A stretch of DNA of 64,000 nt, taken from contig JBLDXI010000048.1 of NCBI GenBank assembly GCA_047495785.1, forward strand, positions 62,001 through 126,000, read 5' to 3'. This DNA is from Lepidodermella squamata (taxonomy: Eukaryota > Animalia > Gastrotricha). Each line of letters opens with the position of its first letter. Position 1 is the stretch's first letter. Made by a program: the position numbers and the translations under genes. The notes beneath the pieces were generated by a model. That model worked only from the letters and a program-made list of their open reading frames with translations. It was not told the DNA's origin and did no database searches. Of the stretch, positions 4,393 to 62,264 are shown piece by piece.

Positions 4393-4669
4393 CATATCAC
4401 GCCGGCTATTGAGGCAAACCGCCGTCATGGCACCTCCTGTACAATTGCATTATAATAGTCCTTTATCATCGCGTCTTTTTTTGAGAGAAATTTGAATAAA
4501 AATGCAGCTTTTGGCAATTGTATTTCTTGCTTTGGATTCCGAAAACTTGGCCACTGGATTTTCATGGGTCAATTTGTCCAATTTTTTCGCCCTGATCAGC
4601 AATCAACAATAGTGGTCTTTGGAACTTTTTGGCGTGCTAAATTTATTGTGCAATAACATCGCCACCAAA

Positions 4670-4755
4670 CCCGCGATAGCTCAGCTGGTAGAGCGGAGGA
4701 CTGTAGATGCAACGCAGTTATCCTTAGGTCGGTGGTTCAAGTCCGCCTCGCGGGA
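4670..4755 (+). tRNA. tRNA-Tyr(GTA), 13-nt intron 4707-4719
   Basis: cccgcga/tcgcggg acceptor stem, ctGTAg, intron after position 37, A/B boxes. Confidence 0.95.
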
Positions 4756-4839
4756 GTTGACAGCTTTTTGAGTGAAAAATTGTGTAATTGCAATTACAAA
4801 TGTTTTGCTGAGGGCTCTCGTCCACGCTGTGATGCAACA

Positions 4840-4921
4840 GTCGCTATGCCCGAGTGGTTAAGGGGTCTGACTCGAAATCAGATGCGGTTTCCGCGCGTAG
4901 GTTCGAATCCTACTGGCGACG
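4840..4921 (+). tRNA. tRNA-Ser(CGA)
   Basis: Cloverleaf with long variable arm, ctCGAaa. Confidence 0.95.
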
Positions 4922-5019
4922 CTCAGTTTTTGGTTGCTGTAGCAGGAAGTAAGCTAGCTATTCAAACTACTACAATGACCGTAAACATCGTCTGACCATG
5001 ACTATGACACGCATGCAAG

Positions 5020-5091
5020 TCCTTGGTAGTATAGTGGTTAGTATCCCCGCCTGTCACGCGGGAGACCAGGGTTCGATTCCCTGCCAAGGAG
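5020..5091 (+). tRNA. tRNA-Asp(GTC)
   Basis: Cloverleaf, ctGTCac. Confidence 0.95.
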
Positions 5092-5152
5092 CATTCATTT
5101 TGCTGTAGCAGATCAAAATGCCTGTATTAAAATTTCCCTGCAAAAGTATTAT

Positions 5153-5234
5153 CGACGCAGAAGGGATTCGAACCCTCGCGGGCAGAGCCCAATGGATTAG
5201 CAGTCCATCGCCTTAACCACTCGGCCACCGCGTC
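5153..5234 (-). tRNA. tRNA-Ser(GCT)
   Basis: Cloverleaf, ctGCTaa, long variable arm. Confidence 0.95.
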
Positions 5235-5340
5235 CATATCAATTACAAGCTGCGTGGCGATCATTGAGCTGGCTTTGATTCAACTATTGGTGTAAGTTAC
5301 AAGAGCCCGCTGATCGAAATATCGCCTAACCGCGAAATCA

Positions 5341-5412
5341 GCCACGGTAGTATAGTGGTTAGTGTTCCTCGTTGTGGCCGAGGTGACCCTGGTTCGACTC
5401 CAGGCCGTGGCA
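5341..5412 (+). tRNA. tRNA-His(GTG)
   Basis: Cloverleaf, ttGTGgc. Confidence 0.92.
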
Positions 5413-5516
5413 GAGTCACACAGAACTCGAGACAGCGGCAGGCGGTTCAATTTTTTGCATACTTATTGACAGCGACGACGGGTTTTTGTAAAAAGCCAAG
5501 CCAAAAAGCTTACAGC

Positions 5517-5589
5517 TGATTCGGGCCGGGATTGAACCGGCGACCTTCTGCGTGTTAGGCAGATGTGATAACCACTACACCACCGAACC
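5517..5589 (-). tRNA. tRNA-Val(AAC)
   Basis: Cloverleaf, ctAACac. Confidence 0.95.
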
Positions 5590-5665
5590 GCTCGTGCCAG
5601 TGCTATTATTTCGCGGCGTATCGTCACCTCTATGCATGCCACCTCTTAGACTTTAAAAACGTTAA

Positions 5666-5749
5666 TGTCAGAAGTGGGATTCGAACCCACGCCAGTAGAA
5701 ACTGACTGCGACCTGAACGCAGCGCCTTGGACCGCTCGGCCATCCTGAC
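5666..5749 (-). tRNA. tRNA-Leu(CAG)
   Basis: Cloverleaf, ttCAGgt, long variable arm. Confidence 0.95.
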
Positions 5750-5901
5750 TGACGGAGTGGGATGAGTGCAACGTGCTTAGGCGAGCCCGGCATGTGAATC
5801 GAAAGCTACTACTGGCTGAATTCGATCTCGATCTCGAACGCGGCTGCGGCGAGTCTCGAGTGAAGCTGGATTGACGGAATGCGGAAAGAAGCCGCCAGGA
5901 A

Positions 5902-5983
5902 GTCGCTATGCCCGAGTGGTTAAGGGGTCTGACTAGAAATCAGATGCGGTCTCCGCGCGTAGGTTCAAATCCTACTGGCGACG
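5902..5983 (+). tRNA. tRNA-Ser(AGA)
   Basis: Cloverleaf, ctAGAaa. Confidence 0.95.
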
Positions 5984-6066
5984 AGTAATTTTGCAGTCGT
6001 GTTGGGCTCAAAAACACTCCAAAAAATCACTACATACTTGATTCTCAGCTGCTAAACTTCTGACCG

Positions 6067-6139
6067 GGCGCTGTGGCGAAATGGCTATCGCGTCGGACTT
6101 CGGATCCGAAGATTGTGGGTTCGAGTCCCATCAGCGTCG
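6067..6139 (+). tRNA. tRNA-Arg(TCG)
   Basis: Cloverleaf, ctTCGga. Confidence 0.93.
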
Positions 6140-6236
6140 ACAAATTTTGCACCCGTTGAGGGCGGCTTATTTGCCGCTTGGAAATCAGCAGCATCGAAAT
6201 CTTCTCCAGCTCTATAAACGGCCGCCATCAACATGG

Positions 6237-6309
6237 GCCTTCCTAGCTCAGTCGGTAGAGCATGTGACTTTTAATCACAGGGTCGGGGGTTCGAGTCCCC
6301 CGGAGGGCG
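6237..6309 (+). tRNA. tRNA-Lys(TTT)
   Basis: Cloverleaf, ctTTTaa. Confidence 0.95.
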
Positions 6310-6356
6310 CAAGCTTTTTCAAGGCAATTACCGTAACCGCTGCTATACGAAATCAC

Positions 6357-6429
6357 GGGGGATTAGCTCAAATGGTAGAGCGCTCGCTTAGCATGCGAGA
6401 GGTAACGGGATCGACGCCCGTATCCTCCA
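6357..6429 (+). tRNA. tRNA-Ala(AGC)
   Basis: G3:U70 pair, ttAGCat. Confidence 0.95.
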
Positions 6430-6507
6430 ATTTTTCTCGCAAAATTTCATAACCTGGCTAGGCTTCTCTACGCGAATAATGCCACTGCTGCAGAAATACC
6501 CAGCCTC

Positions 6508-6579
6508 GGCTCAGTAGCTTAGTGGTAGAGCGTCTGCCTAGTAAGCAGAAGATCGAGGGTTCGATCCCCCCCTGAGCCT
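6508..6579 (+). tRNA. tRNA-Thr(AGT)
   Basis: Cloverleaf, ctAGTaa; C7 run gives canonical length. Confidence 0.9.
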
Positions 6580-6654
6580 TGCTTGACTTTTTCGGCGGCA
6601 AGCTCTCTTTTTGCGTACCAAAACCTACAATTGACATTGCAAAGCTCAAAAACT

Positions 6655-6726
6655 TTCCCTGACCGGGAATCGAACCCGGGCCGCCGCGGTGAAAGCGCGG
6701 AATCCTAACCACTAGACCATCAGGGA
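6655..6726 (-). tRNA. tRNA-Glu(TTC)
   Basis: Cloverleaf, ctTTCac. Confidence 0.95.
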
Positions 6727-6819
6727 GCTGCTTCTTCATATGCGCTGTGGCATCAACGTAACAGGAATATGTTGGCAAAAACTGTGCATATGCATGAATG
6801 GCTTGAATTCAAAAATTAT

Positions 6820-6891
6820 GGGCCCGTTCGGGAATTGAACCCGAGACCTCTCGCACCCGAAGCGAGAATCATACCCCTAGACCAACGGGCC
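6820..6891 (-). tRNA. tRNA-Pro(CGG)
   Basis: Cloverleaf, ttCGGgt. Confidence 0.95.
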
Positions 6892-6976
6892 TCATCTAAA
6901 AGTTTTATGGAATTTCTTGCTCTTGAGGGCTGGTTGTTTGCCGTTTTGAAATATCGCTTTTATGAAAAAAGAAGCT

Positions 6977-7049
6977 CGCCGAGACCCGGGATCGAACCAG
7001 GGACCTTTAGATCTTCAGTCTAACGCTCTCCCAACTGAGCTATCTCGGC
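6977..7049 (-). tRNA. tRNA-Phe(GAA)
   Basis: Cloverleaf, ctGAAga; discriminator base is G. Confidence 0.93.
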
Positions 7050-7261
7050 GTGTGCAATGTGAACTTGCAGGGGCGAGCTACAGCTTTGAAGGCACACGCC
7101 CAAGTCCGAGTTGTGTGCACACTGGCGTTGCAGAGTTCTTTGGCACTGCGCATGGTTAGCTTCTACTCGAACGGCCTGAACTCCAGCGCACAAGGCATAA
7201 ATGACGGTACGAAATTCAAATGAAGAATTATGGCGAACCCTGTCAACATAACTAACGTCAA

Positions 7262-7333
7262 GGCCCGTTGGTCTAGGGGTATGATTCTCGCTTTGGGTGC
7301 GAGAGGTCTCGGGTTCAAATCCCGGACGGGCCC
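7262..7333 (+). tRNA. tRNA-Pro(TGG)
   Basis: Cloverleaf, ttTGGgt. Confidence 0.95.
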
Positions 7334-7413
7334 GATCTTTTTGGTTGATTAGCGACATACGCCTTGCCAGCAGAGGCCTGCGTATTGTTTCAGGCGGGGC
7401 AATGAATACAGCG

Positions 7414-7488
7414 GCATCGGTGGTTCAGTGGTAGAATTCTCGCCTGCCACGCGGGAGGCCGATGCGAGTTCGATTCCCGGCCGATGCA
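7414..7488 (+). pseudogene. tRNA-Gly(GCC) with disrupted T-stem
   Basis: ggcc-gatgcga-gttcga replaces ggcc-cgg-gttcga seen in copies 2 and 3. Confidence 0.8.
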
Positions 7489-7570
7489 ACGCACACAATT
7501 TTTGAGCTATCTATTTTGAACGGCTTTCAAACCACTAAAGTACTACGTGTCAGCTACAATGAATGTAACG

Positions 7571-7642
7571 TCCTTGGTAGTATAGTGGTTAGTATCCCCG
7601 CCTGTCACGCGGGAGACCAGGGTTCGATTCCCTGCCAAGGAG
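7571..7642 (+). tRNA. tRNA-Asp(GTC)
   Basis: Identical to 5020-5091. Confidence 0.95.
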
Positions 7643-7705
7643 AACCTTTTTCTCGCTCTTCGAAAACGCAATCTATTGGAGGATCTAAGAAGCAAAAAGC
7701 GAAAT

Positions 7706-7778
7706 CGCCCGATGTGGGGCTCGAACCCACGACCCTGGGATTAAGAGTCCCATGCTCTACCGACTGAGCTAACCGGGC
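7706..7778 (-). tRNA. tRNA-Lys(CTT)
   Basis: Cloverleaf, ctCTTaa. Confidence 0.95.
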
Positions 7779-7861
7779 TGAGACAGTGTCGTCGTCTACC
7801 CCGAAAATATGAGAAGTAGCAAAGCCTGTGTAGATCCAATGATGCTTTCTCTAAAAAAATT

Positions 7862-7884
7862 CGAGGCTGCCAGGAGTCGAACCT
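7862..7884 (-). pseudogene. 3' fragment of tRNA-Arg(ACG) at the cassette breakpoint
   Basis: Matches 31401-31423, then homology stops. Confidence 0.85.
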
Positions 7885-8884
7885 TCCATTTCCAATAATT
7901 TTTCGTATATGTAACTTCAAAGCTTGAATGCTATGCCCTTTTAATGAATAAGCAAATTATTATACAAGATTTGTCAGCATTTTCGTCTGCTGTTTCGTCG
8001 CGTTTGCTGTTTTGTGTCAGCTTCGATGTGTCACCCGAGTTTCAGTGAAAGCTGTGTTAATCTGAGTCGTCTAAAACGGAAGATTTTTAGTGGCTCGTGC
8101 AGAAAGCATGGACTTAACTTCACAAATTCGTAGCGATTCCGGTTCAGACTTCAGACCATTATTTTTCCTTTTTTCAAAGCGTCAGTTCCCGTTCGTTCTG
8201 ATCCAATATTCAGCACGGGAAATTCGGCTGCGCAGTGGGAAGTTTTCGAATAACAGTGAATTGCAGGAAAATAAGCTGAAATGGGTCAAAATTTTAGCGG
8301 GAAATTTCGCAGGTTTTACAAAGATTTCCACGACACTACCGGCGACAGTACGGGGTTCCCCCGCCGGCATAACAACCCAATTTTTCAAAATTTCGCAGTT
8401 GCGCAATCTGAACAATGCATGAAATAAGGACGAAATTAACAAGGGCCACCATACCCCTCCATCGTATAAAAACGACGTCAATCTTGGAGTAAACAAAATC
8501 GCATGTTTTTTCGTAGTTGAAATTTTTATTAGCAATTATTCTCATCATCAAATCGTGGCGTGTGTCGATCGATATAAGAAGAAGCTATGGCGCAGTCAGT
8601 CGCGAATATGCACACTCGAGCAACACACGATTCGCCGAGTCGGACTTGAATTACAATCTAGAGGAATAAGTACCGCCTACTACATCATAGTATGTAACAA
8701 TCGAAACGTGTGCCATCGACATTATTTCATACACGCGCAGCAACAACTGTACACGCCGCTGTTCGAGATAGGCACACGAAATGACACGAAATGAATAAAC
8801 GAATGCGAACAACGACGACGAAAGAACAACTAGAGAGAAAAAGAGAGTGAAGCCTGTACACAGCCTACAAAAGCGAGAAGATCA

Positions 8885-11800
8885 TCATCTCTGCTGTGCG
8901 CCGTACTGCCCGCCGGCATAGCTCTGCCACGGGTTCTGAGTCGCCGATGGCGCCGCTGCAGACTGCTGAGCCGCCGCCGCTTGCTGCTGCGATGGCTGTT
9001 GCCCAGTTGCCGCCGTCTGCTGCTGCGCCTGGGCCGCGGCCGCGTACTGGCTGTAGTACTGCTGCCACTGCGCCCACTGCTGCTGGTAGGCGGCCTGCTG
9101 CGCGGGTGTCATCGAGGCTGTCGAGGTGGGCGGCTGGCCGGGCGCGGCGGCGGGTGCGGCAGCCGATGCCGAGCCCGGCGTCGCTCCGCCTTGTTGCGCC
9201 TGCGCCGCTTGCGCCAACTGCTGCTGGTGTTGCTGCCATTGAGCACCGTATTGCTGCCACTGTCATAAACACAAAAATGCGAAAATCAATCACATGGATA
9301 AATAAATAATCGTCCTAAGGCGCCTTAACTGCTCAAAACATTACGTAAATGATTTTCCGATTTTTCAACTTTTCCCCTATTTTCCCGTAACTGAGTTCGC
9401 GAAACAAAAGTGATCAACAACAACAACAGAGAAAACCCGATGGTAAACGGTTCGGTATTTTCGGTACTTTACCATATTAAACCGATTTTTAAGGTATACT
9501 TAAAGTTAATTGTATTTCAGTTTTTTCCAGCACTCGTTTTTTTGCGAAAAACAAGTTGACATTCGCAGATATTTCAACTAGTCTTTTCACCAGTCTATGA
9601 TCGACAATTTGTTCAATCGGATATATAGATTGCATTCTAGCCCTATACTACAAGATCAGAAATCGCACTTACCCATCGCTGTTGCTCGGCTGTCCAGCCC
9701 TGTTGATTGGGCGGCGCCGCTCCAGCCGCAGCCGGTGCCGCGCTTGTCGGGGCCGGTGCCTGTGCCGGGGCCGCCGCTGGAACCGCACTAGGCTGTTGTT
9801 GTTGCTGGTGCCAGTTCGGAGGCGCCGTCTGCTGCTGTTGCTGCGGGGCGACAGGCCGCGGCGGTTGCGCCTGCCAATTCGGCGGCTGAACTTGCTGCTG
9901 CTGAGGGGGCTGAGTCGTCTGCTGTTGCTGTTGCTGCTGGTTCCACTGGTTCCACTGCTGCTGCGGCGGTGGCTGTTGTTGCTGTTGCTGAGCAGCCGGA
10001 GCCTGGTACCCACCGTATTGCGGCTGTTGCGGTTGTTGCTGCTGGTGGTGATAAGAAGACCCTACCGGCGCTGCGTACTGGCCCTGTTGCTGCTGCTGGG
10101 GTGCTCCCGAGGGCGGGCCTGGGCGCTGCGGCGGCTGACTGCTCGACGCCACCGGCGGCACCGTCGAAGAACCGCCCTGGTCCTGCGACCACCGGCTCTG
10201 GCGCGGCCTCTCGCCGTTCTGCGGCCGCTGGTTGTAGCCACCCTGCTGCGGCGGCGGCGGACCTTGCTGCTGCTGGGGAGGCGGTGGACCCTGCTGGTAG
10301 CCTCCCTGGTACCCTCCGCGAGGCGGGCCCTGCTGCCAGCCACGCTCAGGCGGCGGACCGCCCCGGCCCCCGCGATCGAAATCATCCCGCCGCTGGTCAC
10401 CCCAGTTGCCGCCTTGCTGCGGCGGCGGACCACCCCACCTCTGACCCGGGCCCATCGTTGGGTTGGGCAGCAAGCCCTCGCGAGGCGGCCCACCCCCACG
10501 GCCTCCCCGGTCCGAATACCCGCCTCGGTATCCCGTTCCAGCGCCCGGCGGTGGCGGACCACCACGCGGCGCCCCTCGACCGAACCCACGGCCCCGGTAC
10601 CCGCCGTCGTAACCGCCCCGCTCGCTCTGGTACCCCGGCTCGAAGCGGGGAGGCGGCGGCGGTGGGCCTCGCGACCGGTACCGATCAAACTCCGACTCGC
10701 GAAAATGCTCCGGCTCATCGCGGTTGTTCGGAAACCGCGGCGGCCGCCTGTCATCGCCGCCGCCCCGGCCCCGGTCGTCATGGTAGCCGCCACCCCGGCG
10801 CTCGGCGTACCCGCCCCGGCCAGGCCCGAACCGGTCGCCGCGCGTGCGGTCGCTGAAGCGGTCGAACGGCCGGCGGCCATACGACTCGGACGAGCGGCCG
10901 CCGTCGTTGTAGCGCGAACTGCGCGAGTTGTGGTAGTCGGAGCCGCCGCGCGACGCCGCCAGCTCCTCATCTCGCTCGCGCGCCTTCTCGAGCTCGCGGG
11001 CGCCGTCCTCGTTGTACTGTTTCACGAGGTCGCGCGCCTCCTGCTCCGGCAGCTCGGCGTACTCGATCGAGTCGAGGTAGCCGCCCGAGGTGGACGGCAG
11101 CTCGAAGCCGGCGCGCATCTCGACGATGGCGTCGAACGGGATGTCGCGGCCCTCGATGCGCTCGCGCTCCGCACACCGCCGCTTGTACTCCTCGTCGGGC
11201 GGCACGACGACGACGGCCTTGCGCTTGAAGCCGCCGAACAGCGTCATCTTGCGGCGCTGCGTCGACGTGTACACGTTCGTCTGGTCGAGGATGTAGTTGC
11301 GCGGCCGCGTCGCCGCCACTTCGATCAGCTTGTTCAGGCACCGCATCGCCGTGTCGATCAGGTCGCACATTTTGCCGCGCTGTTCGTCCTTGTGCACGCG
11401 CCGGCGCGGCTTGTCGTCGAGCCGCATCGCGTCGAGCACGTACGAGACGCCGAGCGCGTTGAAGCGCATCTCGGCGCGCTCGTGCAGCAGCTTGTTCACG
11501 TAGAAGGTCTTGCCGGCGGAGGGCAGGCCGCACATCATGATGACCTCGCACTCGGCCTTGGAGGCGGGCGGCAGGGGGTTGCGTTCGCGCTCCTCCACCG
11601 CCACGTCGTTGAGCATGACGAAGCCGGCGGGCAGGGCGAACCACGGCGTCGCTTTCTGGCCGAAGTTGCACTCGACCGAGACGTTTTTCAGGAGGAGGTG
11701 CGGCATGAGGGCGACGGGCAGCGGCGTTTCCTGGCCCTCGGTCGCGTTTGCCAGCAACTCCGCGCGGTTGAAAGTGAACGCGTGGACGAGAGGCAGCGGC

Positions 11801-14800
11801 GGCGCTTGCTGCTGCTGCTGCTGATCTTCGACAACGGCAACTGCGGCGGCGGGCGGTGATTTCATTTCGGCCTCGCTTGTTTGGCCTGGCGTTGCATCGC
11901 CGGCTGGCGGTTTTTCGCCGTCGACTGCCATCGGCACCGCGGCGGCGTCCTTCTCCTTTTCCTTCTCCTTCTCCTTCTCTTTGTCCTTGTCTTTCGACTT
12001 GCTGATCGGCATTCGCTCGCCGTTTCGCATCAGGTCGACATAGACAAATTCTGGCTCGGACAGATCCTGCAAAATTCATTTAGAAATAGTCTTAATCATG
12101 CTAATAAGTAGACGGTGAATTAAAATTCGTGAACGTTATCAGAAGTTCCATGGTAAGATAGGTCAAATAATTGAAAATCAATAGACTGTTCAGGAGCAAA
12201 AAATAACGCTCATTGTAAACCAAAAGGAGTAAATGAAAAATGAAAAATGGAGACAAAACGTTTTCTCAGTGCAATCTGCGCGGTTAATTCTATCATTACT
12301 GGTTGGTTTACGTTGACAAAATGCAACAATGTGTGGTTTCAACGTTCAACTTCATGAATCAGATTCATGCCATGCAAATAGAACTCGAATTTAGACAGTA
12401 ATTATTCAAGGCTAGTTTTTAACGCGACGATGTTGCGGACGACGATCGCAAGGCGCGCTTTTAGTGGGCGAGGGAATGCGCTTTCACCGTCGCATTTGTT
12501 GAGCTAATCCACGAGCATCGCGAAAACCGCACACACAATTGTTGCATTCAACTAACAAATCAGGTTTGCTTCAATCTTTGCCCAAGAAAGGGAGTAATGC
12601 GAGTTTCAGAAACAAATCACAGAATTCGACAGGCGCATGCGGTTGGAAACAGACCAACTTATTCAACGCTGGCACATTTTTCTGGTTGAACGGGTGTGCA
12701 TTTTGAATTTTGATGTGCCAAATGGGAAAAATCTTACGCCGGTACCAAATTTCATTTAATTCAATACCTAACCATTTTATTCGTTTTTCAACTGGTTAGG
12801 GTTAGGGTTAGGTTAGGGTTGATTGAAGACTGGGTCTTCAAATTGGGGATTTGGAATAATTTGGTACGGAATTCAATGATGTTTGGTACTGAATTCAATA
12901 ATTTGGTAATGATCTCACTATATCCCGTGCCAATTTACTTGAACAAGTCGCGTGTCAATAAGACAATAATAGGCCAGTATGAAATGTCGGGGATAGGGCC
13001 GCGTTGCAAAATATCAACTGCAATTATTTAGTTTCTAAACGGGTACCTATTCAAACCGAAACCCCGCAAAAATTACAATAAATGAGAGCCGAAGCTGCGG
13101 AATTGCCTCTTTTTGATTTAGGTACGACAAAGTCTATCACTAATCAGCCGCCTACACTTTGGAAAACCAGATTTTAACCAGTCGTCTACTAATTCGTCTG
13201 TCATGGGAGGTTAACGACTTACGAGTAAAACGGTGATGACATCGGTTTCGGTGCACTTGGAGCCGAATTCGCGTGATTCGTGCTTCGAGCTGATCAAGCG
13301 GCCGCGGCAGTCGAACGCAAACGACAGCTTGTCATCGGCGAGGCGATTCGGCGCGACCGACGGCGTCGAAAAGCCGATGCGCAGCACGTGGCGCGGCTTC
13401 TCGTCCGGGTGGATCGACGTGGGCGTGATGAGGCGCACGACGCGCACTTCGTAGGCGACGCGCGCCCGCGACTCGAGGGTGATGGGCACGCCGTACGTCG
13501 CCTTCACGCCGCCCATCATCATGCCGAAGCCCTCGTCGTTCATCGTCTTGGCGCGGTAGCCGTCGTGGTCGAGCACGAGGTTCAGGTCGGAGAAGAAGCG
13601 GTCGAGCGCGACGGTCGTCGACTGCCACCACAGGTCCGGTTCCGCGCCGCTGGCGCCGGCCGAGCTCAGGTCGAGCGCGCCGCCCGACGACGAGCCGCCG
13701 ACGCGGCGCCGCTTCTCGTCGGGCTCGCGCGACGACACCGACTCGTCGTCGTCGTCGCGTGACCGCCGGTGCTCCGAGCGCCGGTGGCTGCCAGAGTCGC
13801 GGTGGCTCGGCCGGTCGCGGTCGTGGTCTGAGGAGGAGCCGCGGCGGGCGCTGTTGCTGCCGTTTCGCGGCGACCTCGAATTTCCGGGCGATTCCGATCG
13901 GTATCTGTCGCGGCTAGAAAATAGTGAAAATTGCAGTTAAAAATCACGTGATCGATTTACGAAAATAACATAATTTATCATCATCAGCAAAACCGCTTCG
14001 AGAATAATTAGACAAAATTAAGCAATCGTGAAATTTCGTCATGGTTTATGTCTAAAAGTGTCCCATCGTCAGAAAAAGCTAGCAAGAGCTCTCGAGAGAG
14101 TTTGTCTCGACTAAACAAATTACACCAGATTTTGACGTAACTTTCTGAATTTAGGATTTAGGTTCTCCAAACACGAAAAAAACTTATTTTTGGGAAAAAT
14201 AACGTCAGAGTCACAAATGTAACACTGGAAACATAAATGTATAGCAGGGTGTGCACTTTTCTACACCGTAGCAATTTTCTACAACGATGTGGTTAATTTG
14301 TCTCAAGGTTGAGCAATATTAGACTAGAATATTATATTTCGAAAAATCTCAATTTTCCAATTGAATCTTTCCGCAAATAACAGACATAAAAAGCCGAAAG
14401 CTTGAGATTGCGAGTCAAGTTTCAAGCCCATCAAAGTCATGGGTAAAAGTATCAAAGTTACCAAACTCACATTTTCTCTGCAACAGGTTGGTTTTCAGAT
14501 TCTGGCTGGTCCTGGGACTTATGTTCGCCGGAACTATCGCCGTTATTATTATTGTTGTTGTTAGCCGACTCTTCTCCGTCGTCAAAGTCGTTATTTTTGT
14601 TGCTATTTTCAGCGTTGTCATTGCCACCACCATGGCTATTTGATCCGTGATCATCATCATCTTCATGCATAGCGTGCGGATTTTCGCCATATTCGTGATA
14701 TGATGGCTTCTGATCAGGGTAAGCGCCTTGGTCATAATGCTCACCAGCCTGGCCATTTTCTTCGCCATAATACTGACCACCATCACCAGGCTGTTTATAG

Positions 14801-18920: not shown

Positions 18921-21900
18921 ATGCTGAAATTACTGTCGAGTTTAACCGGGGCGTTGAGTAAATTGACGGTGAATCCGGTGCGCAATGTGTCATTTGCGAA
19001 TTCGGTGACTGCCGATGAGCTGTGGCGGTCGGTGACGTCGAAGAGCGCGGCTGGCGGCAAGCGGACGGGCGGCAAACGAGGCGGTACGAAGAAGAAGACT
19101 GACTTGAACCGCGGCCAGGTGATCGGCATGGGCGCGCGCGGCATGATCTGGCCCGGGCTGAACTCGCCCGTGTCGCAGGGCCCGCGCCTCGTCGCCCAGG
19201 CGCCGTTCACGCCCGACCCGCACCGCATGGATGCGATTTACCGCCTGCGCAACAAGCTGGGCGTGCGGCGGCGCATGAAATTGGCGCCGCTCGAGCGAGG
19301 CTGGACCGGGTCGCGGTGGCCAGGCATGAAAATCGGCCCGCCTGATCCGATCGGCGATTGTAAGTTGACTATAGATCGTTTGCAAATATACCCAAGTATT
19401 ATGAGCTCGAACGTGTAATAGCTATACCTATTGCAAATTAGGGTTGCACTTTATTTAACCCGCAATCGCAACAATCGCCGTATTTCGCTTGCGGTCGACT
19501 GTTATAGGGCTGGAAACCTCGAAGCCTATTATCTTGGCTGCTAAAATTTGAAACATGAGGCCGATTCACGAAAAAATATTGAGAAAACTGGCGAAATTTA
19601 AACTTGGAATTTCAGTTCGAGTTTAGCATGTTGTAGTTCGCGAATGCTCTATGGCTACCTCATATTCAATGCAGAATTGAAACTTGGAGTTATTTCATTA
19701 TTTCATTAGAAATAGGCGTGTGGTAGATGCATGTTTAAGCTAGATTGAGTAGGTGTTAAGTATCACAAAAATTGTCTTAGTTTTTCGCGTTCCCGTAGAA
19801 TCCGTGTGAATGTGAACATTCTTACAAGCCCACTGGGATGAAATTTTGTTTACGACCTCTGCCTCTCGGCACTCGCGGCGCGTTGACCCACTGACGTAAG
19901 CAAGCCTAATCAACCCTTCCATACCGCAATAAGATTCAAAAAATTCGTACCGGGGAGTTTCTTGGGAATGTACATACTGTATATACCGATTTGGAAGGCT
20001 CTGCCTTGTCACTGCATCAATCAACCTGCAGCTCCTGCTTGAAGTAACTTGAAATCATCGGAACAATAATTACTTTCATCGTACCATTTTTATCTGAAAC
20101 CATCGGAACCATCGGAATAAATATTTCGCTATTAAAAATTCATTATTTCATCGGAAAAGCTTCATTTCAATAACAGTATATTCCGACACTTTAAGTTACT
20201 GATTTCCGACGAATAATTAGAAAGCTGTTTTAAATTTTAAACCCCGGCGCGTATTTCGAGTTGCTAGCCCTCCGTTTTTTCCTACGCCAACAGAAACAGA
20301 GCCGGTGAGTTTGCCACGACCTCGACCTCGGCTACAGACAGTTTCGTCAACAGATATCATCGATGTGATAGCTGTTAACCGACTACGACCACGCCTTGGT
20401 TCAGAAACCACAGGTTCAGCTTGGGCTGGAACATTAGCCGTACTAGGACCACGTCTAGGCTCAGCAACCAAAGGTTTCAGAAACCCAGTGATTGATGACA
20501 TCGTCGGTTTTCGAGAGAAATGCAGTGAGGGCGGGACAGTCCTATCAGTTCCTTCAGCCTTTACCCGATTATTCAGCGATTCATTCGCGTTATTAGTTAT
20601 AGAGCGTTATTATTATAAAATCAGAGGCGCCTTCATACCAACACGACAGCGGACCATAGATATAAATTGGCTAGAATTACTTCATGAAGTCTTCGTAAAC
20701 GCAAGCATTAGGAATAGCCCTAAGCTCATCCTTCGTCGATAGCCATAACACTAGGAACTGCAAAGAGAAATTGATTAATTATCGTCTGAAACCGTCGGAA
20801 ATCGCCTCGTTGTAATCTTTTGCCAGTTGGACGACAAAAATAGGTCCGTTTTTTCGTTTCTTGGAAAATTTCTATGAACGCACTTGACCATTTTACAGGA
20901 ATGGAAACATTTTTAGCGTACCGTAACGCGCCCTAAATTTGGACACCCCAAATTTGGACACTTTGAGCTTTAGCCCAAAATATCAATTTGTGCATAACTG
21001 ATAAAAATTTCAAAATTTCACTGAAAAATAGCTCCCTTCATGGGCTTTCCAACGGTACCAAATTTGCCAATACTTTCATGTACTATCGATTTGCGAAAAA
21101 TCGCCGAAGCTCGATCACTCAGAAAGGTGTTTTGGGACCCCCCTTGCCAAATGCTCACCTGTGAACGGTTAGGGCTGAAATTTTTTTTGCGCATAGGGAT
21201 TTACCTAAACTAAATTCTGTATAAAAATCTCGGCAGAAGGACAAGCCAATTTTGATACAGGTGACTTTGAATTTAGCCTCTAAATTTGGACACTTTTAAT
21301 GATATTTTTATCTCTATGCATATGCAAACGAAATGTATGCTTTTTGTCAGTTTTTGAAAAGAATGGCAACGCATTGATGGAACCTTGGAATTAGCTTAAT
21401 GACTCCCGGCCTAGGCTATGTTTCAAATATCTGCGATTGAATATTAAATTTTCTGAGGTAGGAAATGTATGAGGGTGCCCACTTAGACGTTCAGGGTCTG
21501 CTTTTTCCAACACACACAAACACGCAACGGGCGTCGGTAAACGAACACATGGGTTAAGGACAGTAAATTTGGCGACATGATGTAATGCGCGTCTGATCCA
21601 ATTTATTGGCTCAGGTCAGTCTGTGATCCCCCGATCGCAGTGACGCTGGAGGGGCACTTTGATTGCCCGATCGGCGCGGCTCTCTGAGCCAAATGCCCCA
21701 GTAGGTTAGGGGGGGGGGGGGGGGGGGGATTTTCTGAGGTTAATATCGTTGCGAAGTCGAGTGGTGTTCATTAGAACGCGCACTTCAGATTATTTCTCAA
21801 ACAATTTCTGCTGCTGTTATTATCGATACGCCAACTTCGTCAGATATTTCCAACAACAAGCTGTTTCAACATCAAGCTGTACGTCATCGATCGATACTAC

Positions 21901-24900
21901 TACGAGCGCGTGGCAATCCCATTCATCGATTCAACCACGTGGCATGGCTCCTCCAACATTGACTGCTGCTGAAAAATATGCATGGGATTTCTTTCATGGC
22001 TTCTTTCCGGAATACAAAGCAAATCTGATCGAAAAAATTGGTTATCCCAGTATTAGCCGCATCCTTAGGGCGTATGCCTCCTTGCTCGACCTCGACCAGG
22101 CTGAACGAGATTTCCTACTCGATATGATGGAAGCCGATGAATTTGGAAAAGATCGCTGGATCATCCATGAACGGAACTGCGACGATAAGTCAACCCAAAC
22201 AAGGCCGATTAAGCCGATTGTCCAACTGAATCAGTCAACCGAAACCGAACCGATCGTTGAAAAACGTGTTAAGCCAATCCTACCGCCTAAGAAAACAAGC
22301 GAAACTACTGTTCTACTCCAAACGAATCCGAACTGCGACCGGAAACAACTCTGGTCTAAAATCGTGGCTTCGGCACCGAACGCCAGCTTCAAGAGCTGTA
22401 AACCAACAGCAGATGGGCTGTCTATTCGTCTCGATTCGAGCGAACAGGCGGCTCAGATCCGATGTCTGGAAAAGATTCCTGGTGCGAAAATCATTCAAAC
22501 TGCTAAGCCGAAATACCGAATTGTGTTGACCAACTTCGACACCGATGCTGTATCAACGACTGCGATTAAGGCTGCCTTTGGCGACAAGATGAATAAGATG
22601 GTCGAACTACGCGGCAAACAAGCTATGTTCGAGCTCAACGACTACGATCTTGCTGAAAATTGCGTGAAAAACGGCCTGATCTGCAAGCCGTTCATGTTAC
22701 GATTCCGATGGTTTATTGTCAAGCAATCTGATGTTGTTCAATGTTTCAACTGCCAGCGATATGGCCACCTGGCTCGAAACTGCTCTGATGAGACGCGATG
22801 CTTACGATGTGGTCGCAAACACGACGTGAAGACCTGCATGCGGGGTGTTCGTTGCTGCAATTGTGGTGGCGAGCACACCGCGAACTCGAGGGATTGCCCT
22901 CTGCGCCGGCCTTCGGCTGGCTGAAACGAAAGTTTCATGGGAAATTGCGATGCAATTTCAAGACGGGTCGGGGGGTAACTGGGATTTCTAACGAAATCCT
23001 AGTTGCTCATCCACTCTAAATTTGGGAAAATTTTTAAGGACGGGATAGTTTTGGTCCCAAGGGGCGGGTTCTGGGTCTAAGTGGTGACGGCGGGTGGTTA
23101 AGTTGGTCCCACTTTGGCTACATGATGAATCCGCTGCCAGGTCCGTCTGTGATCTTCCATCACAAGTGACGCTGTAGGGGCAAATTGATAGCCCGATCGG
23201 CGCGGCTCTGAGCCAAATTCCCCAGTAAGTTAGGGGGGGGGGGGCTATGTTTTCATGATTTTGGCTTAAGAGCATAGAGAATAATAATGAATCCGAATAC
23301 AAATCTGACGGCGCCCAATCTTTAATTAAACAGGTGAACAGCAGGTACCATGGGACTAATGAGAGTTCAATTTCGGTAAATAATATCAATAGTTCGGCGA
23401 TAAAGAAACTGAGTTTGAGGTTAAACCATGGGTTGAGATTTGAATGAGTCCCTCCGTCTACTTTCTAAGTGAGACTCGGTGCTTCAGAGACATTTTCACC
23501 TGGTTTATCATAATTTTGAGAAGATTCATCGTTCATTAACGGTATTAAAATCCTGGTGTATAATTGGTATTGCGTACATCTGCATTAAATCTGACGATGA
23601 GTGAATCCTATCGGTAGCAATATTTTAGTGTCAAGTGGCTACAAAAACACGAGAAAAATTGCGCAACAAGAAATAAAGTGTGTGTAAGGTCGAATTAGCA
23701 TATGCAAATGAGGTGTCCAAATTTGGGAACGAGTGTCCAAATTTAGAGGTTTCTTTACCTATTTTTTTTAAATCAAGGTGAGCTTCTAAATTTTCCAAAC
23801 TTCACCTGTCCACGCAGATTCCTTGGGCGGAGGTTTGGCTATTTTTTTCCATTTTTTTAGACGAAAACCGAATTTTTTAAAATTAAAAAAGGTGTTTTGT
23901 CCAAAGTTAGGACGCGTTACGGTATTATTTCCAATATCAACTGCGAAAACGAGTTATCTGTTCAACACTTGATAGTAGAAATAGCATAGCCGTGTTAGTT
24001 CGAAAATTAGGCCAAGTTAGGTAGTTGCTATGTTATTAGAATCTGCATTCTAACAGTCGCACAAGAAAGTAGCCTGAATGTAATTGAGATGCGATGGCTT
24101 CGAACAATTTTGGGCATAAAATTATTGGACTTCATACCTAACTACGACCTCAGATTGGTTTGCGGTGGAGGCATAGAGGTCGGAAGGTTGATAGAAAAAC
24201 AAAGAATGAGATACTTAGGCCACATTATTCGAGAAGATGAATATAACGCTAGCAGCTTGACAAACGCAATGCTAAATTGGAATAACCCCGAAAAATGGAA
24301 AAAACCCAAAGGCGCACCTAAAACTACCTGGCGTCACGCAATGAATAGAAGTCTCAACAAAATAGGATTGGTCAAATTACAATACACAAATATTTATGAA
24401 GGACCCCCGAAAGTTGGGAGACCGGCGAAAACAGCGGTCGTGATAAGGGTTGAAACTAAGGAAGTAGCTGATTGGGAACTGACGCAAATAGCAGCGCGAG
24501 ATCGCAACGAATGGCGAATGCTAACTTTAACAATAGCGAATTTCGAATTTCATGCGAAAAGCAGGCTCTTCATGAATGTGACCGATGGCGGCACCCCATG
24601 ATCGCTGATCGTCACCCTCCCCTAAACCTTTGCGGTAAAACGGTTCCTCTTGTTGTGCGAATATTACCATCACAAGCCAACAATGAACCAGCGGAGGAGG
24701 AAAAATAAAACTTTTCATTGTTTCATTGTTTCATTGTTTCATAGAATCTGCAACGTTCATGATTAACAAGGGGCATGGGCCAGTTTCAAGTCTTGAATGT
24801 CCGTTATCGTCACTTGACCAGAGGTTTTCATTCAACGTCTTAATAAAAATCAACCACCGCGGAGGAAGCGAGCTTTAGCGAGAGATTTGGGTCGAAATTT

Positions 24901-56951: not shown

Positions 56952-57551
56952 AACGAATTTGTTGTTGTAAATATTCTGGATTTTCTTCACCGGTTACTTG
57001 TTGCGATCTTGCTGATAATAAGATTATGAAGAGCTTTCCGATGACGATTTTATACTACATTTTTTCTACGATGTCACCTTACGTTCTTATTTGCAATATT
57101 ATCATGATATTGGTCTTATTTTTTGAATACACACAAGCTCATTTTCTTCTGTTGAAATTATAAACTCTGCTGAATACCTGATATGATATGCTACCTCATC
57201 TTCACGTCACTGCTGTTGTATCATTTTTGCATGAAATTTCGCGCGCGCACCTGTTCACAATCATGACTATGAAGAGTTTTTTAGCAAGTTTTTTCGACTT
57301 GTTTTTTCTTGGTTTTTTTTACATCTTGGCACTTCCGGGCAAACTGTTGTTGAGAAGAGATTGTAAAATAAAAGAGCATTTGTTGAGAGATATTCGGCTT
57401 TTTACTTTGCTTTTGATTCCCAAGTTGAATCCTACTGGCGACGCTCAGTTTTTGGCTGCTGTAGTCTTTGCTGTAGCAGGGAGTAAGCTAGCTATTCAAA
57501 CTACTACAATGACCGTAAACATCGTCTGACCATGACTGACACGCATGCAAG

Positions 57552-57623
57552 TCCTTGGTAGTATAGTGGTTAGTATCCCCGCCTGTCACGCGGGAGACCA
57601 GGGTTCGATTCCCTGCCAAGGAG
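57552..57623 (+). tRNA. tRNA-Asp(GTC)
   Basis: As copy 1. Confidence 0.95.
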
Positions 57624-57684
57624 CATTTGTTTTGCTGTAGCAGATCAAAATGCCTGTATTAAAATTTCCCTGCAAAAGTTTTAT

Positions 57685-57766
57685 CGACGCAGAAGGGATT
57701 CGAACCCTCGCGGGCAGAGCCCAATGGATTAGCAGTCCATCGCCTTAACCACTCGGCCACCGCGTC
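57685..57766 (-). tRNA. tRNA-Ser(GCT)
   Basis: As copy 1. Confidence 0.95.
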
Positions 57767-57872
57767 CATGTCAATTACAGGCTGCGTGGCGATCATTGAG
57801 CTGGCTTTGATTCAACTATTGGTGTAAGTTACAAGAGCCCGCTGATCGAAATATCGCCTAACCGCGAAATCA

Positions 57873-57944
57873 GCCACGGTAGTATAGTGGTTAGTATTCC
57901 TCGTTGTGGCCGAGGTGACCCTGGTTCGACTCCAGGCCGTGGCA
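57873..57944 (+). tRNA. tRNA-His(GTG)
   Basis: As copy 2. Confidence 0.95.
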
Positions 57945-58043
57945 GAGTCACACAGAACTCGAGACAGTGGCAGGCGGTTCAATTTTTTGTATATTTATTG
58001 ACAGCGCAGCCGGGTTTTTGTAAAAAGCCAAAAAGCTTACAGC

Positions 58044-58116
58044 TGATTCGGGCCGGGATTGAACCGGCGACCTTCTGCGTGTTAGGCAGATGTGATAACC
58101 ACTACACCACCGAACC
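58044..58116 (-). tRNA. tRNA-Val(AAC)
   Basis: As copy 1. Confidence 0.95.
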
Positions 58117-58192
58117 GCTCGTGACAGTACTATTAATTCGCGGCGTATTGTCACCTCTATGCATGCCACCTCTTAGACTTTAAAAACGTTAA

Positions 58193-58276
58193 TGTCAGAA
58201 GTGGGATTCGAACCCACGCCAGTAGAAACTGACTGCGACCTGAACGCAGCGCCTTGGACCGCTCGGCCATCCTGAC
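58193..58276 (-). tRNA. tRNA-Leu(CAG)
   Basis: As copy 1. Confidence 0.95.
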
Positions 58277-58424
58277 TGACGGAGCGGGATGGGTGCAACG
58301 CGCTTAAGTGAGCCCGGCATGTGAATCGAAAGCTACTACTGGCTGAATTTATCTCGAACGCTGCGGCTGCGGCGAGTCTCGAGTGAAGCTGGATAGACGT
58401 AAAGCGGAAAGAAGCCGCCAGGAA

Positions 58425-58506
58425 GTCGCTATGCCCGAGTGGTTAAGGGGTCTGACTAGAAATCAGATGCGGTCTCCGCGCGTAGGTTCAAATCCTACTG
58501 GCGACG
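58425..58506 (+). tRNA. tRNA-Ser(AGA)
   Basis: As copy 1. Confidence 0.95.
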
Positions 58507-58589
58507 ACTATTTTTGCAATCGCTTCCGTTGCCAATTCCCAAAATGTCAGTTATATGCACACTTTTCTCCCAGATTCTCAAACTGAACG

Positions 58590-58662
58590 GGCGTTGTGGC
58601 GAAACGGCTATCGCGTCGGACTTCGGATCCGAAGATTGTGGGTTCGAGTCCCATCAGCGTCG
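58590..58662 (+). tRNA. tRNA-Arg(TCG)
   Basis: Two substitutions relative to copy 1. Confidence 0.9.
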
Positions 58663-58758
58663 ACAAATTTTGCACCCGTTGAGGGCGGCTTATTGCCGCT
58701 TGGAAATCAGCAGCATCGAAATCTTCTCCAGCTCTATAAACGGCCGCCATCAACATGG

Positions 58759-58831
58759 GCCTTCCTAGCTCAGTCGGTAGAGCATGTGACTTTTAATCAC
58801 AGGGTCGGGGGTTCGAGTCCCCCGGAGGGCG
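58759..58831 (+). tRNA. tRNA-Lys(TTT)
   Basis: As copy 1. Confidence 0.95.
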
Positions 58832-58908
58832 CAAGCTTTTTCAAGTCAATTACCGAAACCGCTGCTATACGAAATCATATTAGCAATAAATCGTCTGGTT
58901 ACTACCAC

Positions 58909-58981
58909 GGGGGATTAGCTCAAATGGTAGAGCGCTCGCTTAGCATGCGAGAGGTAACGGGATCGACGCCCGTATCCTCCA
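58909..58981 (+). tRNA. tRNA-Ala(AGC)
   Basis: As copy 1. Confidence 0.95.
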
Positions 58982-59058
58982 ATTTTTCTCGCAGAATTTT
59001 ACAACCTACTAGACTAGACTAGACGAATAGTGCCACTGCTGCAGAAATACCCAGCCTC

Positions 59059-59131
59059 GGCTCAGTAGCTTAGTGGTAGAGCGTCTGCCTAGTAAGCAGA
59101 AGATCGAGGGTTCGATCCCCCCCCTGAGCCT
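59059..59131 (+). tRNA. tRNA-Thr(AGT), C8 run
   Basis: One extra C relative to copy 1. Confidence 0.82.
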
Positions 59132-59206
59132 TGCTTGACTTTTTCGGCGGCAAGCTCTCTTTTTGCGTACCAAAACCTACAATTGACATTGCAAAGCTCA
59201 AAAACT

Positions 59207-59278
59207 TTCCCTGACCGGGAATCGAACCCGGGCCGCCGCGGTGAAAGCGCGGAATCCTAACCACTAGACCATCAGGGA
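59207..59278 (-). tRNA. tRNA-Glu(TTC)
   Basis: As copy 1. Confidence 0.95.
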
Positions 59279-59371
59279 GCAGCTTCTTCATATGCGCTGT
59301 GGCATCAACGTAACAGGAATATGTTGACAAAAACTGTGCATGTGCATGAATGGCTTGAATTCAAAAATTAT

Positions 59372-59443
59372 GGGCCCGTTCGGGAATTGAACCCGAGACC
59401 TCTCGCACCCGAAGCGAGAATCATACCCCTAGACCAACGGGCC
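59372..59443 (-). tRNA. tRNA-Pro(CGG)
   Basis: As copy 1. Confidence 0.95.
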
Positions 59444-59528
59444 TCATCTAAAAGTTTTATGGAATTTCTTGCTCTTGAGGGCTGGTTGTTTGCCGTTTTG
59501 AAATATCGCTTTTATGAAAAAAGAAGCT

Positions 59529-59601
59529 CGCCGAGACCCGGGATCGAACCAGGGACCTTTAGATCTTCAGTCTAACGCTCTCCCAACTGAGCTATCTCGG
59601 C
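59529..59601 (-). tRNA. tRNA-Phe(GAA)
   Basis: As copy 1. Confidence 0.93.
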
Positions 59602-59813
59602 GTGTGCAATGTGAACTTCCAGGGGCGAGCTACAGCTTTGAAGGCACACGCCCAAGTCCGAGTTGTGTGCACACTGGCGTTGCAGAGTTCTTTGGCACTG
59701 CGCATGGTTAGCTTCTACCCGAACGGCCTGAACTCCAGCGCAGAAGGCATAAATGACTGTACGAAATTCAAATTAAGAATTATGGCGAACCCTGTCAACA
59801 TAACTAACGTCAA

Positions 59814-59885
59814 GGCCCGTTGGTCTAGGGGTATGATTCTCGCTTTGGGTGCGAGAGGTCTCGGGTTCAAATCCCGGACGGGCCC
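59814..59885 (+). tRNA. tRNA-Pro(TGG)
   Basis: As copy 1. Confidence 0.95.
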
Positions 59886-59965
59886 GATCTTTTTGGTTGA
59901 TTAGCGACATACGCCTTGCGAGCAGAGGCCTGCGTATTGTTTCAGGCGGGGCAATGAATACAGCG

Positions 59966-60036
59966 GCATCGGTGGTTCAGTGGTAGAATTCTCGCCTGCC
60001 ACGCGGGAGGCCCGGGTTCGATTCCCGGCCGATGCA
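59966..60036 (+). tRNA. tRNA-Gly(GCC)
   Basis: As copy 2. Confidence 0.95.
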
Positions 60037-60118
60037 ACGCACACAATTTTTGAGCAATCTATTTTGAACGGCTTTCAAACCACTAAAGTACTACGTGTCA
60101 GCTGCAATGAATGTAACG

Positions 60119-60190
60119 TCCTTGGTAGTATAGTGGTTAGTATCCCCGCCTGTCACGCGGGAGACCAGGGTTCGATTCCCTGCCAAGGAG
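60119..60190 (+). tRNA. tRNA-Asp(GTC)
   Basis: As copy 1. Confidence 0.95.
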
Positions 60191-60253
60191 AACCTTTTTC
60201 TCGCTCTTCGAAAACGCAATCTATTGGAGGATCTAAGAAGTAAAAAGCGAAAT

Positions 60254-60326
60254 CGCCCGATGTGGGGCTCGAACCCACGACCCTGGGATTAAGAGTCCCA
60301 TGCTCTACCGACTGAGCTAACCGGGC
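60254..60326 (-). tRNA. tRNA-Lys(CTT)
   Basis: As copy 1. Confidence 0.95.
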
Positions 60327-60406
60327 TGAGACAGTGTCATCTAATCTCAAAATTTGAGAAGTAGCAAAGCCTCTGTTGATACAATGATGCTTTCTCTAAA
60401 AAAATT

Positions 60407-60479
60407 CGAGGCTGCCAGGAGTCGAACCTGGAATCTTCTGATCCGTAGTCAGACGCGTTGTCCATTGCGCCACAACCCC
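60407..60479 (-). tRNA. tRNA-Arg(ACG)
   Basis: As copy 2. Confidence 0.93.
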
Positions 60480-60576
60480 GCTGTGCATTTCGATACAACA
60501 GTTGTTCTCTTGTGGTTTCAGCTTATCCGTACTCGTACCAGGCATTTTCACCGCACTAGAGCTGTTCTTCGTGACA

Positions 60577-60593
60577 GCTTCTGTCGCGCAATT

Positions 60594-60633
<40 letters not shown>

Positions 60634-60650
60634 GAGCCCACCCAGGAGCG
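60577..60650 (+). tRNA. tRNA-Asn(GTT), G9>C change in the A box
   Basis: gcttctgtCgcgc versus gcttctgtGgcgc in copy 2. Confidence 0.85.
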
Positions 60651-62132: not shown

Positions 62133-62264
62133 CGCCTTAACCACTCGGCCACCGCGTCCATGTCAATTACAGGCTGCGTGGCGATCATTGAGCTGGCTTT
62201 GATTCAACTATTGGTGTAAGTTACAAGAGCCCGCTGATCGAAATATCGCCTAACCGCGAAATCA

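Follow-up and report, generated by a model that had tools for sequence, protein, structure and literature searches.

A probable lineage of G-tailed non-LTR retrotransposons specific for the spliced-leader RNA gene, with gag-only relatives, in Lepidodermella squamata

We analyzed a 64,000-nucleotide (nt) stretch of the genome of the gastrotrich Lepidodermella squamata (contig JBLDXI010000048.1, positions 62,001 to 126,000; hereafter, the window), which contains two nested insertions, A and B, that both end in runs of G. The surroundings are ordinary genic euchromatin, with NUP210-, PTEN-, and proteasome-ATPase-like genes nearby. Insertion B (positions 21424 to 23244) ends in ...gtaagtta followed by 12 G residues, and insertion A (21460 to 21728) ends in ...gtaggtta followed by 20. 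A is bracketed by a perfect 12-bp repeat, attttctgaggt, and B by ctatgttt, or by 10 bp if the two G residues of the target are counted. B carries one intact open reading frame (ORF) with three CCHC-type knuckles (Pfam zf-CCHC, E = 2.8e-05), and no reverse transcriptase (RT) was found in the sequence of B or, with Pfam, in its ORF. The similarity between A and B is confined to their 3′ ends (∼110 nt at 87%; ungapped, 72 nt at 82% [family D18]). These are the features on which the original prediction, made from the letters of the sequence, was built: the boundaries, tails, and flanking repeats, the triple-knuckle ORF of ∼326 amino acids (aa) without an RT, the restriction of the common sequence to the 3′ ends, and the position of A in the 5′ end of B. 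All of them were confirmed when the window letters were rechecked, and A proved to sit in a copy of a spliced-leader (SL) exon at the head of B (Table 1).

In contigs of two public runs (X1 and X2), position 21413 is joined directly to 23243, giving an exact empty site, so that B with A inside it is a polymorphic insertion. The G runs had been regarded as possible sequencing artifacts, but they are found beside the same flank in the independent contig sets X3, X4, L070, L071, L076, L077, and L079 and are therefore not an artifact of this assembly. A and B are retrotransposed insertions.

Table 1. Features of insertions A and B and their flanks (window coordinates; a slash marks the end of the SL exon; TSD, target site duplication; UTR, untranslated region)
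Feature	Position	Strand	Evidence
Upstream copy of the TSD of B, (gg)ctatgttt	21414..21423	+	X1/X2 empty-site contigs
Single extra base c at the 5′ junction of B	21424	+	Absent from the empty site and the SL exon
Complete 33-nt SL exon copy forming the 5′ end of B; donor GT at 21458-59	21425..21457	+	Identical to the SL exon of the rDNA spacer (L061)
Upstream copy of the 12-bp TSD of A, attttctgag/gt, the family target site	21448..21459	+	Letters, junction census
Body of A, 5′-truncated 3′ UTR of LINE_A; 3′ module at ∼21612-21708	21460..21708	+	100% identity, L064/L065/L029/L030
G20 tail of A	21709..21728	+	Window letters
Downstream copy of the TSD of A	21729..21740	+	Window letters
5′ UTR of B; its start is a diverged SL intron start (ta.tatc...ttcattagaacgcgc)	21741..21943	+	Element heads aligned with the SL gene
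gag-only ORF, 326 aa plus stop; C-terminal three CCHC-type knuckles; conserved central part with a topology possibly resembling an RNA recognition motif (RRM)	21944..22924	+	
3′ UTR of B; last ∼95-105 nt (∼23138-23232) are the four-hairpin module common to the LINEs	22925..23232	+	
G12 tail of B; count 10-12, since the target supplies GG	23233..23244	+	
Downstream copy of the TSD of B, ctatgttt	23245..23252	+	Window letters

The repeat that flanks A, ATTTTCTGAG/GT, is the end of a 33-nt SL exon together with its splice donor. Contigs of X2 and X4 pile up on positions 21425 to 21457 at a depth thousands of times that of the flanks, run on past ∼21457 into many unrelated sequences, and show adaptor-GGGGG directly before 21425. 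This pattern identifies a capped, trans-spliced 33-nt leader whose exon ends in ...TTTTCTGAG before the donor GT. The SL RNA gene sits in the spacer of an 8,459-bp ribosomal DNA (rDNA) unit, with the 28S, 5.8S, and 18S genes on one strand and the 5S and SL genes on the other. Of 511 leader matches at up to two mismatches, 382 run on precisely into the canonical SL intron and represent the uninterrupted SL genes of the genome; roughly 100 have some other continuation. The SL RNA gene was not recognized by Rfam, even at an E value of ≤10, and the SL sequence itself was not found in a literature search.

A genome-wide search with the last 145 nt of B returned at least 40 hits in several identity classes. 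After the G run, most of these 3′ ends continue into a common sequence, (A)(A)ATTTTCTGAGGTTAGTATCA.... Such continuation into shared sequence had been named as an observation that would speak against a retroelement family, and it does occur; the shared sequence, however, belongs to the SL gene, i.e., to the target and not to the element, and the flanks of off-target copies are unique and carry TSDs. At the 3′ junction, G(n) is followed by AAATTTT, AATTTT, ATTTT, or TTT and then by CTGAG/GT. The 51 junctions comprise 27 with AAATTTT before ...CTGAGGT, 18 with AATTTT, 2 with ATTTT, 2 with TTT, and 2 variants, which fixes the first, bottom-strand nick within ∼4 nt inside TTAAATTTT, 9 to 14 bp upstream of the splice donor. 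A true duplication is shown by 5′-truncated copies and is 12 bp long in A and 8 bp long in a truncated rDNA copy with the same 3′ junction (L069); the second nick therefore varies. The duplication around A is thus the fixed target of the family (SL exon end plus donor), and variable TSDs did not hold up as the main signature of the elements. Because A hit an SL copy in genic euchromatin, the SL exon and a few downstream bases suffice as a target outside the rDNA.

We then counted G-tailed ends across the whole genome. The 3′ end of the family followed by at least six G residues gave 95 matches at up to two mismatches, 75 of them exact, while a reversed-pattern control gave none. The SL site adjoins 50 of the 75 exact tails (51 are counted at ≥5 G), and roughly 50 occupied against 382 intact SL genes correspond to an occupancy of ∼1 in 8. 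At the SL site, the G runs are 5 to 20 residues long (median, ∼10 to 11). Over all lineages the tail is a G homopolymer of 5 to 24, and no poly(A), A-rich, or short-tandem-repeat tail was seen. The remaining ∼25 exact tails lie elsewhere in the genome, and the 11 such copies that were read end in G7 to G24. Most of these have TSDs of 7 to 14 bp with unrelated sequences, and their truncation points are scattered along the element; among the 11, no TSD was seen in two (L005 and L012), and the 5′ end of a third (L014) lies beyond the locus. The fixed 3′ end, variable 5′ truncation, variable-length TSDs, and precise empty site are the hallmarks of target-primed reverse transcription, and the predicted target-primed retroelement lacking long terminal repeats (a non-LTR element), with a fixed 3′ end and G(n), is supported by them.

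Following A-like copies upstream, as suggested at the outset, led to the RT and endonuclease ORF of an autonomous partner. A is 100% identical over 262 to 264 nt to the 3′ ends of four other copies (L064, L065, L029, and L030). The full element, LINE_A (a long interspersed nuclear element [LINE]), is ∼6.5 kb long and lies between two leader sites in rDNA units (L064 and L065). Its ORF1 has 816 codons from stop to stop, with three knuckles at the end, and is overlapped by an ORF2 of 933 codons with RVT_1 (E = 2.6e-36) and Exo_endo_phos_2 (E = 4.2e-17) domains (L065). ORF2 contains no RNase H, no C-terminal Cys-His motif, and nothing after the RT, including no restriction-like endonuclease C-terminal to it. 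In L065, the ORF2 stop lies at 9020 and the part matching A begins at 9657; as A starts ∼640 nt past the stop, it is pure 3′ UTR. The frameshifted reading of A, DVQGLLFP..., is thus not the ORF2 C terminus that had been proposed for it, whereas the idea that A is the truncated 3′ end of a relative was correct. A is a very young 5′-truncated copy of LINE_A. A tRNA- or short interspersed element (SINE)-like origin of A was considered and is ruled out by the same match to a LINE 3′ UTR. In one SL gene (L062), a second LINE lineage, with ∼75% nucleotide identity, and a B copy are arranged head-to-tail, the same architecture as that of A and B in the window.

The domain makeup of these LINEs (a three-knuckle ORF1 and an ORF2 with an apurinic-type endonuclease [APE] and an RT without RNase H) fits the Jockey/R1 type (the “I group”), and the nearest Atlas clusters are arthropod-dominated APE-plus-RT families. 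A phmmer search of ORF2 and of its endonuclease part against the PDB returned only the L1 and R2 RTs and no named clade reference. At positions 6222 to 6246 of L065, the end of ORF1 and the frame of ORF2 have 25 nt in common, and the first ATG of ORF2 comes only at codon 125, which suggests that ORF2 may be expressed by frameshifting or termination-reinitiation. We think it probable that a single lineage of APE-type non-LTR retrotransposons, specific for the SL RNA gene and ending in a G homopolymer instead of poly(A), includes both A and B.

The description of B as a nonautonomous, gag-only element, with a single knuckle ORF and no RT, can be extended to several lineages. Gag-only elements are ∼1.5 to 1.6 kb long and comprise B, a variant of B, and at least four C-type lineages. 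The ORF is intact in nine of 10 full-length B copies and in all five C-type copies examined. The ratio of nonsynonymous to synonymous substitution (dN/dS) is 0.18 to 0.31 between diverged gag-only lineages and 0.37 to 0.60 among C lineages, values that indicate that the ORFs are kept intact under purifying selection. The B and C Gag proteins are 54% identical, and B Gag resembles LINE ORF1 only in the knuckles; outside this genome, the search for Gag homologues gave only matches of the knuckle region to ORF1s from LINEs with the usual two ORFs. In a model of low confidence (mean predicted local distance difference test score of 49.5), the 200 conserved C-terminal residues of B Gag form two beta-alpha-beta-beta-alpha-beta units (residues 121 to 245) followed by the knuckles. 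With this low-confidence model, Foldseek ranked tandem-RRM proteins first (E, ∼1e-3). Low-depth X2 contigs lie over the gag ORF, which is not proof of transcription.

The LINEs and the gag-only elements share their 3′ end. The last ∼105 nt are conserved across both LINE lineages and all gag-only lineages, end in AGTTA-G(n), and fold in each case into the same four hairpins. Across 11 sequences, five more distant relatives included, the hairpins are kept despite changes in the stems: GTGAT/ATCAC, GTGATC/GATCGC, GTGAC/GTCAT, or GTGGC/GTCAC in hairpin 1 (H1); GGGC/GCCC, GAGC/GCTC, or GAGGCC/GGCCT in the inner stem of H2; and GGCT/AGCC, GGCC/GGCC, or GGCTT/AAGCC in H3. In H4, the terminal hairpin, a C run pairs with the first G residues of the tail. 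Hairpins were compared sequence by sequence, as RNAalifold on MAFFT alignments underreports H1 and H3, whose columns are not structure consistent. The five distant relatives (L070, L071, L076, L077, and L079) come from five other public samples and have ORF2s with 47 to 52% identity. All five have the same module and end in ...AGTTAG(T)G6-8, and the four with downstream sequence all run into donor contexts of the type ...TTTCAG/GTnnGTATC. The recurrence of the G tail and of the SL-donor target in distant relatives marks both as old traits of the lineage rather than assembly accidents. At positions 5277 to 5297 of L070, the terminal hairpin reads CCCTAA-loop-TTAGGG followed by more G; this is telomere-hexamer-like, yet it fits the C-run/G-tail hairpin of the family. 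Tail length is not inherited unchanged. Among LINE_A 3′ ends without a single difference over 262 nt, the tails are G13, G15, and G20 and the junction offsets differ; tail length therefore changes between insertion events.

The 5′ ends are likewise linked to the SL gene. In rDNA copies, the leader and GT lead into an element head that is a diverged version of the start of the SL intron. Full-length copies at ectopic sites start at leader position 1 (B, after an extra c) or 4 (L009 and L019), and they retain the donor GT and the head seen in the rDNA copies. As B starts a single extra base before SL position +1, transcription of its RNA most likely started from the SL promoter. Master elements residing in SL genes would then be transcribed from the SL promoter, and each full-length daughter would carry a fresh target at its head, so that head-to-tail arrays would arise. 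A was inserted into the SL exon copy that heads the ectopic B, at the same junction as in the rDNA. The SL/A junction is unique in the genome assembly, which favors in situ insertion of A into B.

Two other histories of the locus have to be weighed against this one. The SL head of B might have been acquired by trans-splicing of the leader onto the element RNA rather than by cotranscription with an SL gene. The animal puts this leader on many RNAs, but a spliced product would be without the GT and joined at an acceptor AG, whereas B and the other full-length copies at ectopic sites have the donor GT and the rDNA-type head after the leader; we consider this origin improbable. Somewhat better placed, though still unlikely in our judgment, is a scenario in which A was not inserted at the locus at all and a composite SL-A-TSD-B transcript from the rDNA array was retrotransposed as one unit. 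Head-to-tail architecture does exist in the rDNA (L062) and at a non-rDNA locus (L014), and the contigs show an allele without both A and B and no B-only allele. This scenario is at odds with the uniqueness of the SL/A junction in the assembly and with the match of A, at 100% identity, to current LINE_A copies, whereas B is ∼5% off most full-length B copies.

As to how the tail is made, the ORF2 protein would bind the shared 3′ module (“stringent” recognition) and nick the leader end, with cDNA synthesis starting in the G run. The run would be part of the template, and slippage as synthesis begins would alter its length, as has been put forward for the short tandem-repeat tails of other stringent LINEs. 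Gag-only elements may be mobilized in trans by the LINE RT via the same module. The run could also be untemplated: the RT would add oligo(dC) to the nicked target, the terminal G residues of the RNA would anneal to it, and the tail would be made anew at each insertion. The different G counts on otherwise 100% identical LINE_A 3′ ends would be accounted for in this way, and in off-target copies the start coincides with the end of the G run, without target-derived bases or complementarity to the A/T-rich primer. The first G residues, however, belong to the conserved terminal hairpin, lineage variants at the start of the tail are inherited (TTAGTG6-7 in L071 and L077), and slippage on a templated homopolymer accounts for the same observations, so that we rate an untemplated tail as rather unlikely. 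The original prediction had pictured a generalist family without site specificity, with a telomere-related TTA-G(n) end and with A as a possible ORF2 C terminus. The TTAGGG-like start of the tail, the terminal hairpin of L070, and the dispersed third of the exact tails with their variable TSDs would suit such a family. Two-thirds of the tails nevertheless share a single fixed site in the rDNA-spacer SL gene, the dispersed remainder have ordinary TSDs, no copy examined lies in telomere-like repeats, and A is UTR; the link to telomere repeats is not supported, and we regard this reading as very improbable. Telomeric, HeT-A-like arrays were also considered and were dropped once the common downstream sequence proved to be the SL gene.

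Several points weigh against an SL-specific, G-tailed lineage with templated tails as we present it. One exact tail in three lies off target, which makes the specificity strong and not absolute. The census consists of pattern counts plus ∼70 genome loci, and duplication of rDNA units inflates copy counts relative to independent events. Homopolymer lengths are error-prone in assemblies, which leaves the exact G counts uncertain. G-ended transcripts are a prediction: the public runs returned were all at contig level, none of them recorded as RNA, and neither the ends nor the strand of an RNA can be read from such data. The module shows only modest covariation, and H4 cannot covary since the G run is invariant. 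As to the RT clade, single-sequence and profile searches gave only unnamed relatives and the Atlas no named LINE. That gag-only elements would be mobilized in trans is something we infer from the shared module only.

A wider reading, to which we give about an even chance, is that the elements represent an undescribed, multispecies clade of APE-type LINEs. Such a clade would have converged on the SL gene, would borrow the SL promoter and thereby re-create its own target, would use a G homopolymer, possibly made or extended by the RT, both to close the terminal hairpin and to initiate reverse transcription, and would support diversified gag-only parasites. In the boldest version, the trans-splicing machinery would process a “giant SL RNA,” a chimera composed of the leader, the element, G(n), a short stretch of the leader, the donor, and the SL intron, and would thereby set the 3′ end of the RNA next to the G run.

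Other sequences also adjoin SL genes or leaders. In rDNA units on C5 and C17, further insertions (L042, L048, and L055) lie in the SL intron, 6 to 14 nt downstream of the donor, and there seem to be additional families with different fixed sites in the SL gene. Unrelated dispersed families also start with a complete SL exon plus GT (L031/L059/L060, L038/L043/L058, and L044/L045); their heads read GGGAGACG..., TTTTTAATTGATA..., and TTTTTAATTGAAA..., and in L044 and L045 an (ATTT)n run immediately precedes leader position 2. Within the window, a 170-aa ORF just downstream of B (24089 to 24601, plus strand) resembles what we take to be the region C-terminal to the RT domain in many LINE ORF2 proteins; it gave no Pfam hit and is probably the remnant of an unrelated LINE. 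X1 and X2 contigs change strand near 23410 to 23450 (joints 23410/23450 and 23412/23449), which points to a short inverted repeat or a fold-back immediately downstream of B. A tRNA block of ∼15 to 20 genes on both strands occurs four times at 95 to 100% identity (4650 to 7950, 28390 to 31960, 57500 to 60650, and 62010 to 64000), and Rfam gives 71 tRNA hits across the window; two of the four blocks flank B. A 2.4-kb region (9643 to 12072) is open on both strands, with an 809-aa minus-strand frame that has an AAA_33 kinase-like domain and a 725-aa plus-strand frame without a family.

APE-type elements are known to target, besides the U2 small nuclear RNA (snRNA) gene, rRNA genes, other small RNA genes, microsatellites, and telomere repeats. 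The R1 and R2 elements of arthropod rDNA share with the present family precise 3′ junctions, tandem insertions, and, as we presume for the family, dependence on transcription of the host gene. Unlike R1, R2, and Keno, the elements here insert into an SL RNA gene of the rDNA spacer and not into an rRNA or U2 gene; their tail is G(n), and they have no C-terminal Cys-His motif. LINEs of the R1 and Tx1 clades such as Keno share with our elements an APE-type endonuclease and sequence-specific insertion into multicopy RNA genes; target specificity of the APE type has been described as confined to these two clades, with the U2 snRNA gene of Keno the only target named among them (PMC4640811). Kojima and Jurka list SL exons among the targets of non-LTR elements, and the SL-specific families they name (NeSL) are restriction-like-endonuclease elements (PMC4640811). 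CRE1, CRE2, SLACS, and CZAR of trypanosomatids and NeSL-1 of nematodes are, like the family described here, site specific in SL exons or genes, a multicopy “safe” target (PMC4640811). CRE and NeSL elements belong to early-branching clades and carry a restriction-like endonuclease, whereas the elements described here have an N-terminal apurinic-type endonuclease, a separate three-knuckle ORF1, a structured 3′ module, and a G tail.

The gag-only elements have counterparts in HeT-A, with its partners TART and TAHRE, and in HAL1, which like B are nonautonomous, gag- or ORF1-only relatives of LINEs relying on an RT encoded elsewhere. HeT-A also forms head-to-tail arrays. In contrast to HeT-A, the elements here reside in SL genes or dispersed genic DNA rather than in arrays at chromosome ends and have a G(n) tail instead of poly(A); their Gag is only distantly related to the ORF1 of the partner, and their arrays would arise because every copy carries the target at its head. 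Stringent LINE and SINE ends consist of a short repeat where reverse transcription starts with slippage. A structured 3′ end common to a LINE and a nonautonomous partner, and presumably recognized by the RT, likens our elements to the eel pair UnaL2 and UnaSINE1, with the differences that the partner here is protein coding (gag-only) and not a small-RNA-derived SINE and that the terminal repeat has a period of 1 (G). In such LINE/SINE pairs, the shared 3′ stem-loop and tail are the recognition element for the LINE RT (PMC5786205). A full-text search (with few subscription journals and without Repbase, so that absence is not proof) found no paper on a G-tailed LINE or on APE-type targeting of SL genes, and the initial impression that no family with a G tail had been described stands as far as this search reached. 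What is new in a site-specific non-LTR retrotransposon is the combination of endonuclease type and target, the kind of tail, and the gag-only dependants.

Site-specific LINEs are natural models for targeted, RNA-templated gene insertion. SL-gene targeting has been described only for restriction-like-endonuclease elements of trypanosomes and nematodes, and an APE lineage doing the same in animals would amount to clear convergence on a “safe harbor.” A G homopolymer within a conserved terminal hairpin would be an unreported way for a LINE RT to find, and start on, its RNA. That a leader copy in genic DNA was hit at the canonical position implies that a target of ∼40 bp is enough and that the rDNA context is not required. 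Purifying selection on the gag-only lineages suggests that a parasite of the parasite can preserve the function of ORF1, and the share of SL genes that is occupied bears on how the host keeps up its supply of SL RNA.

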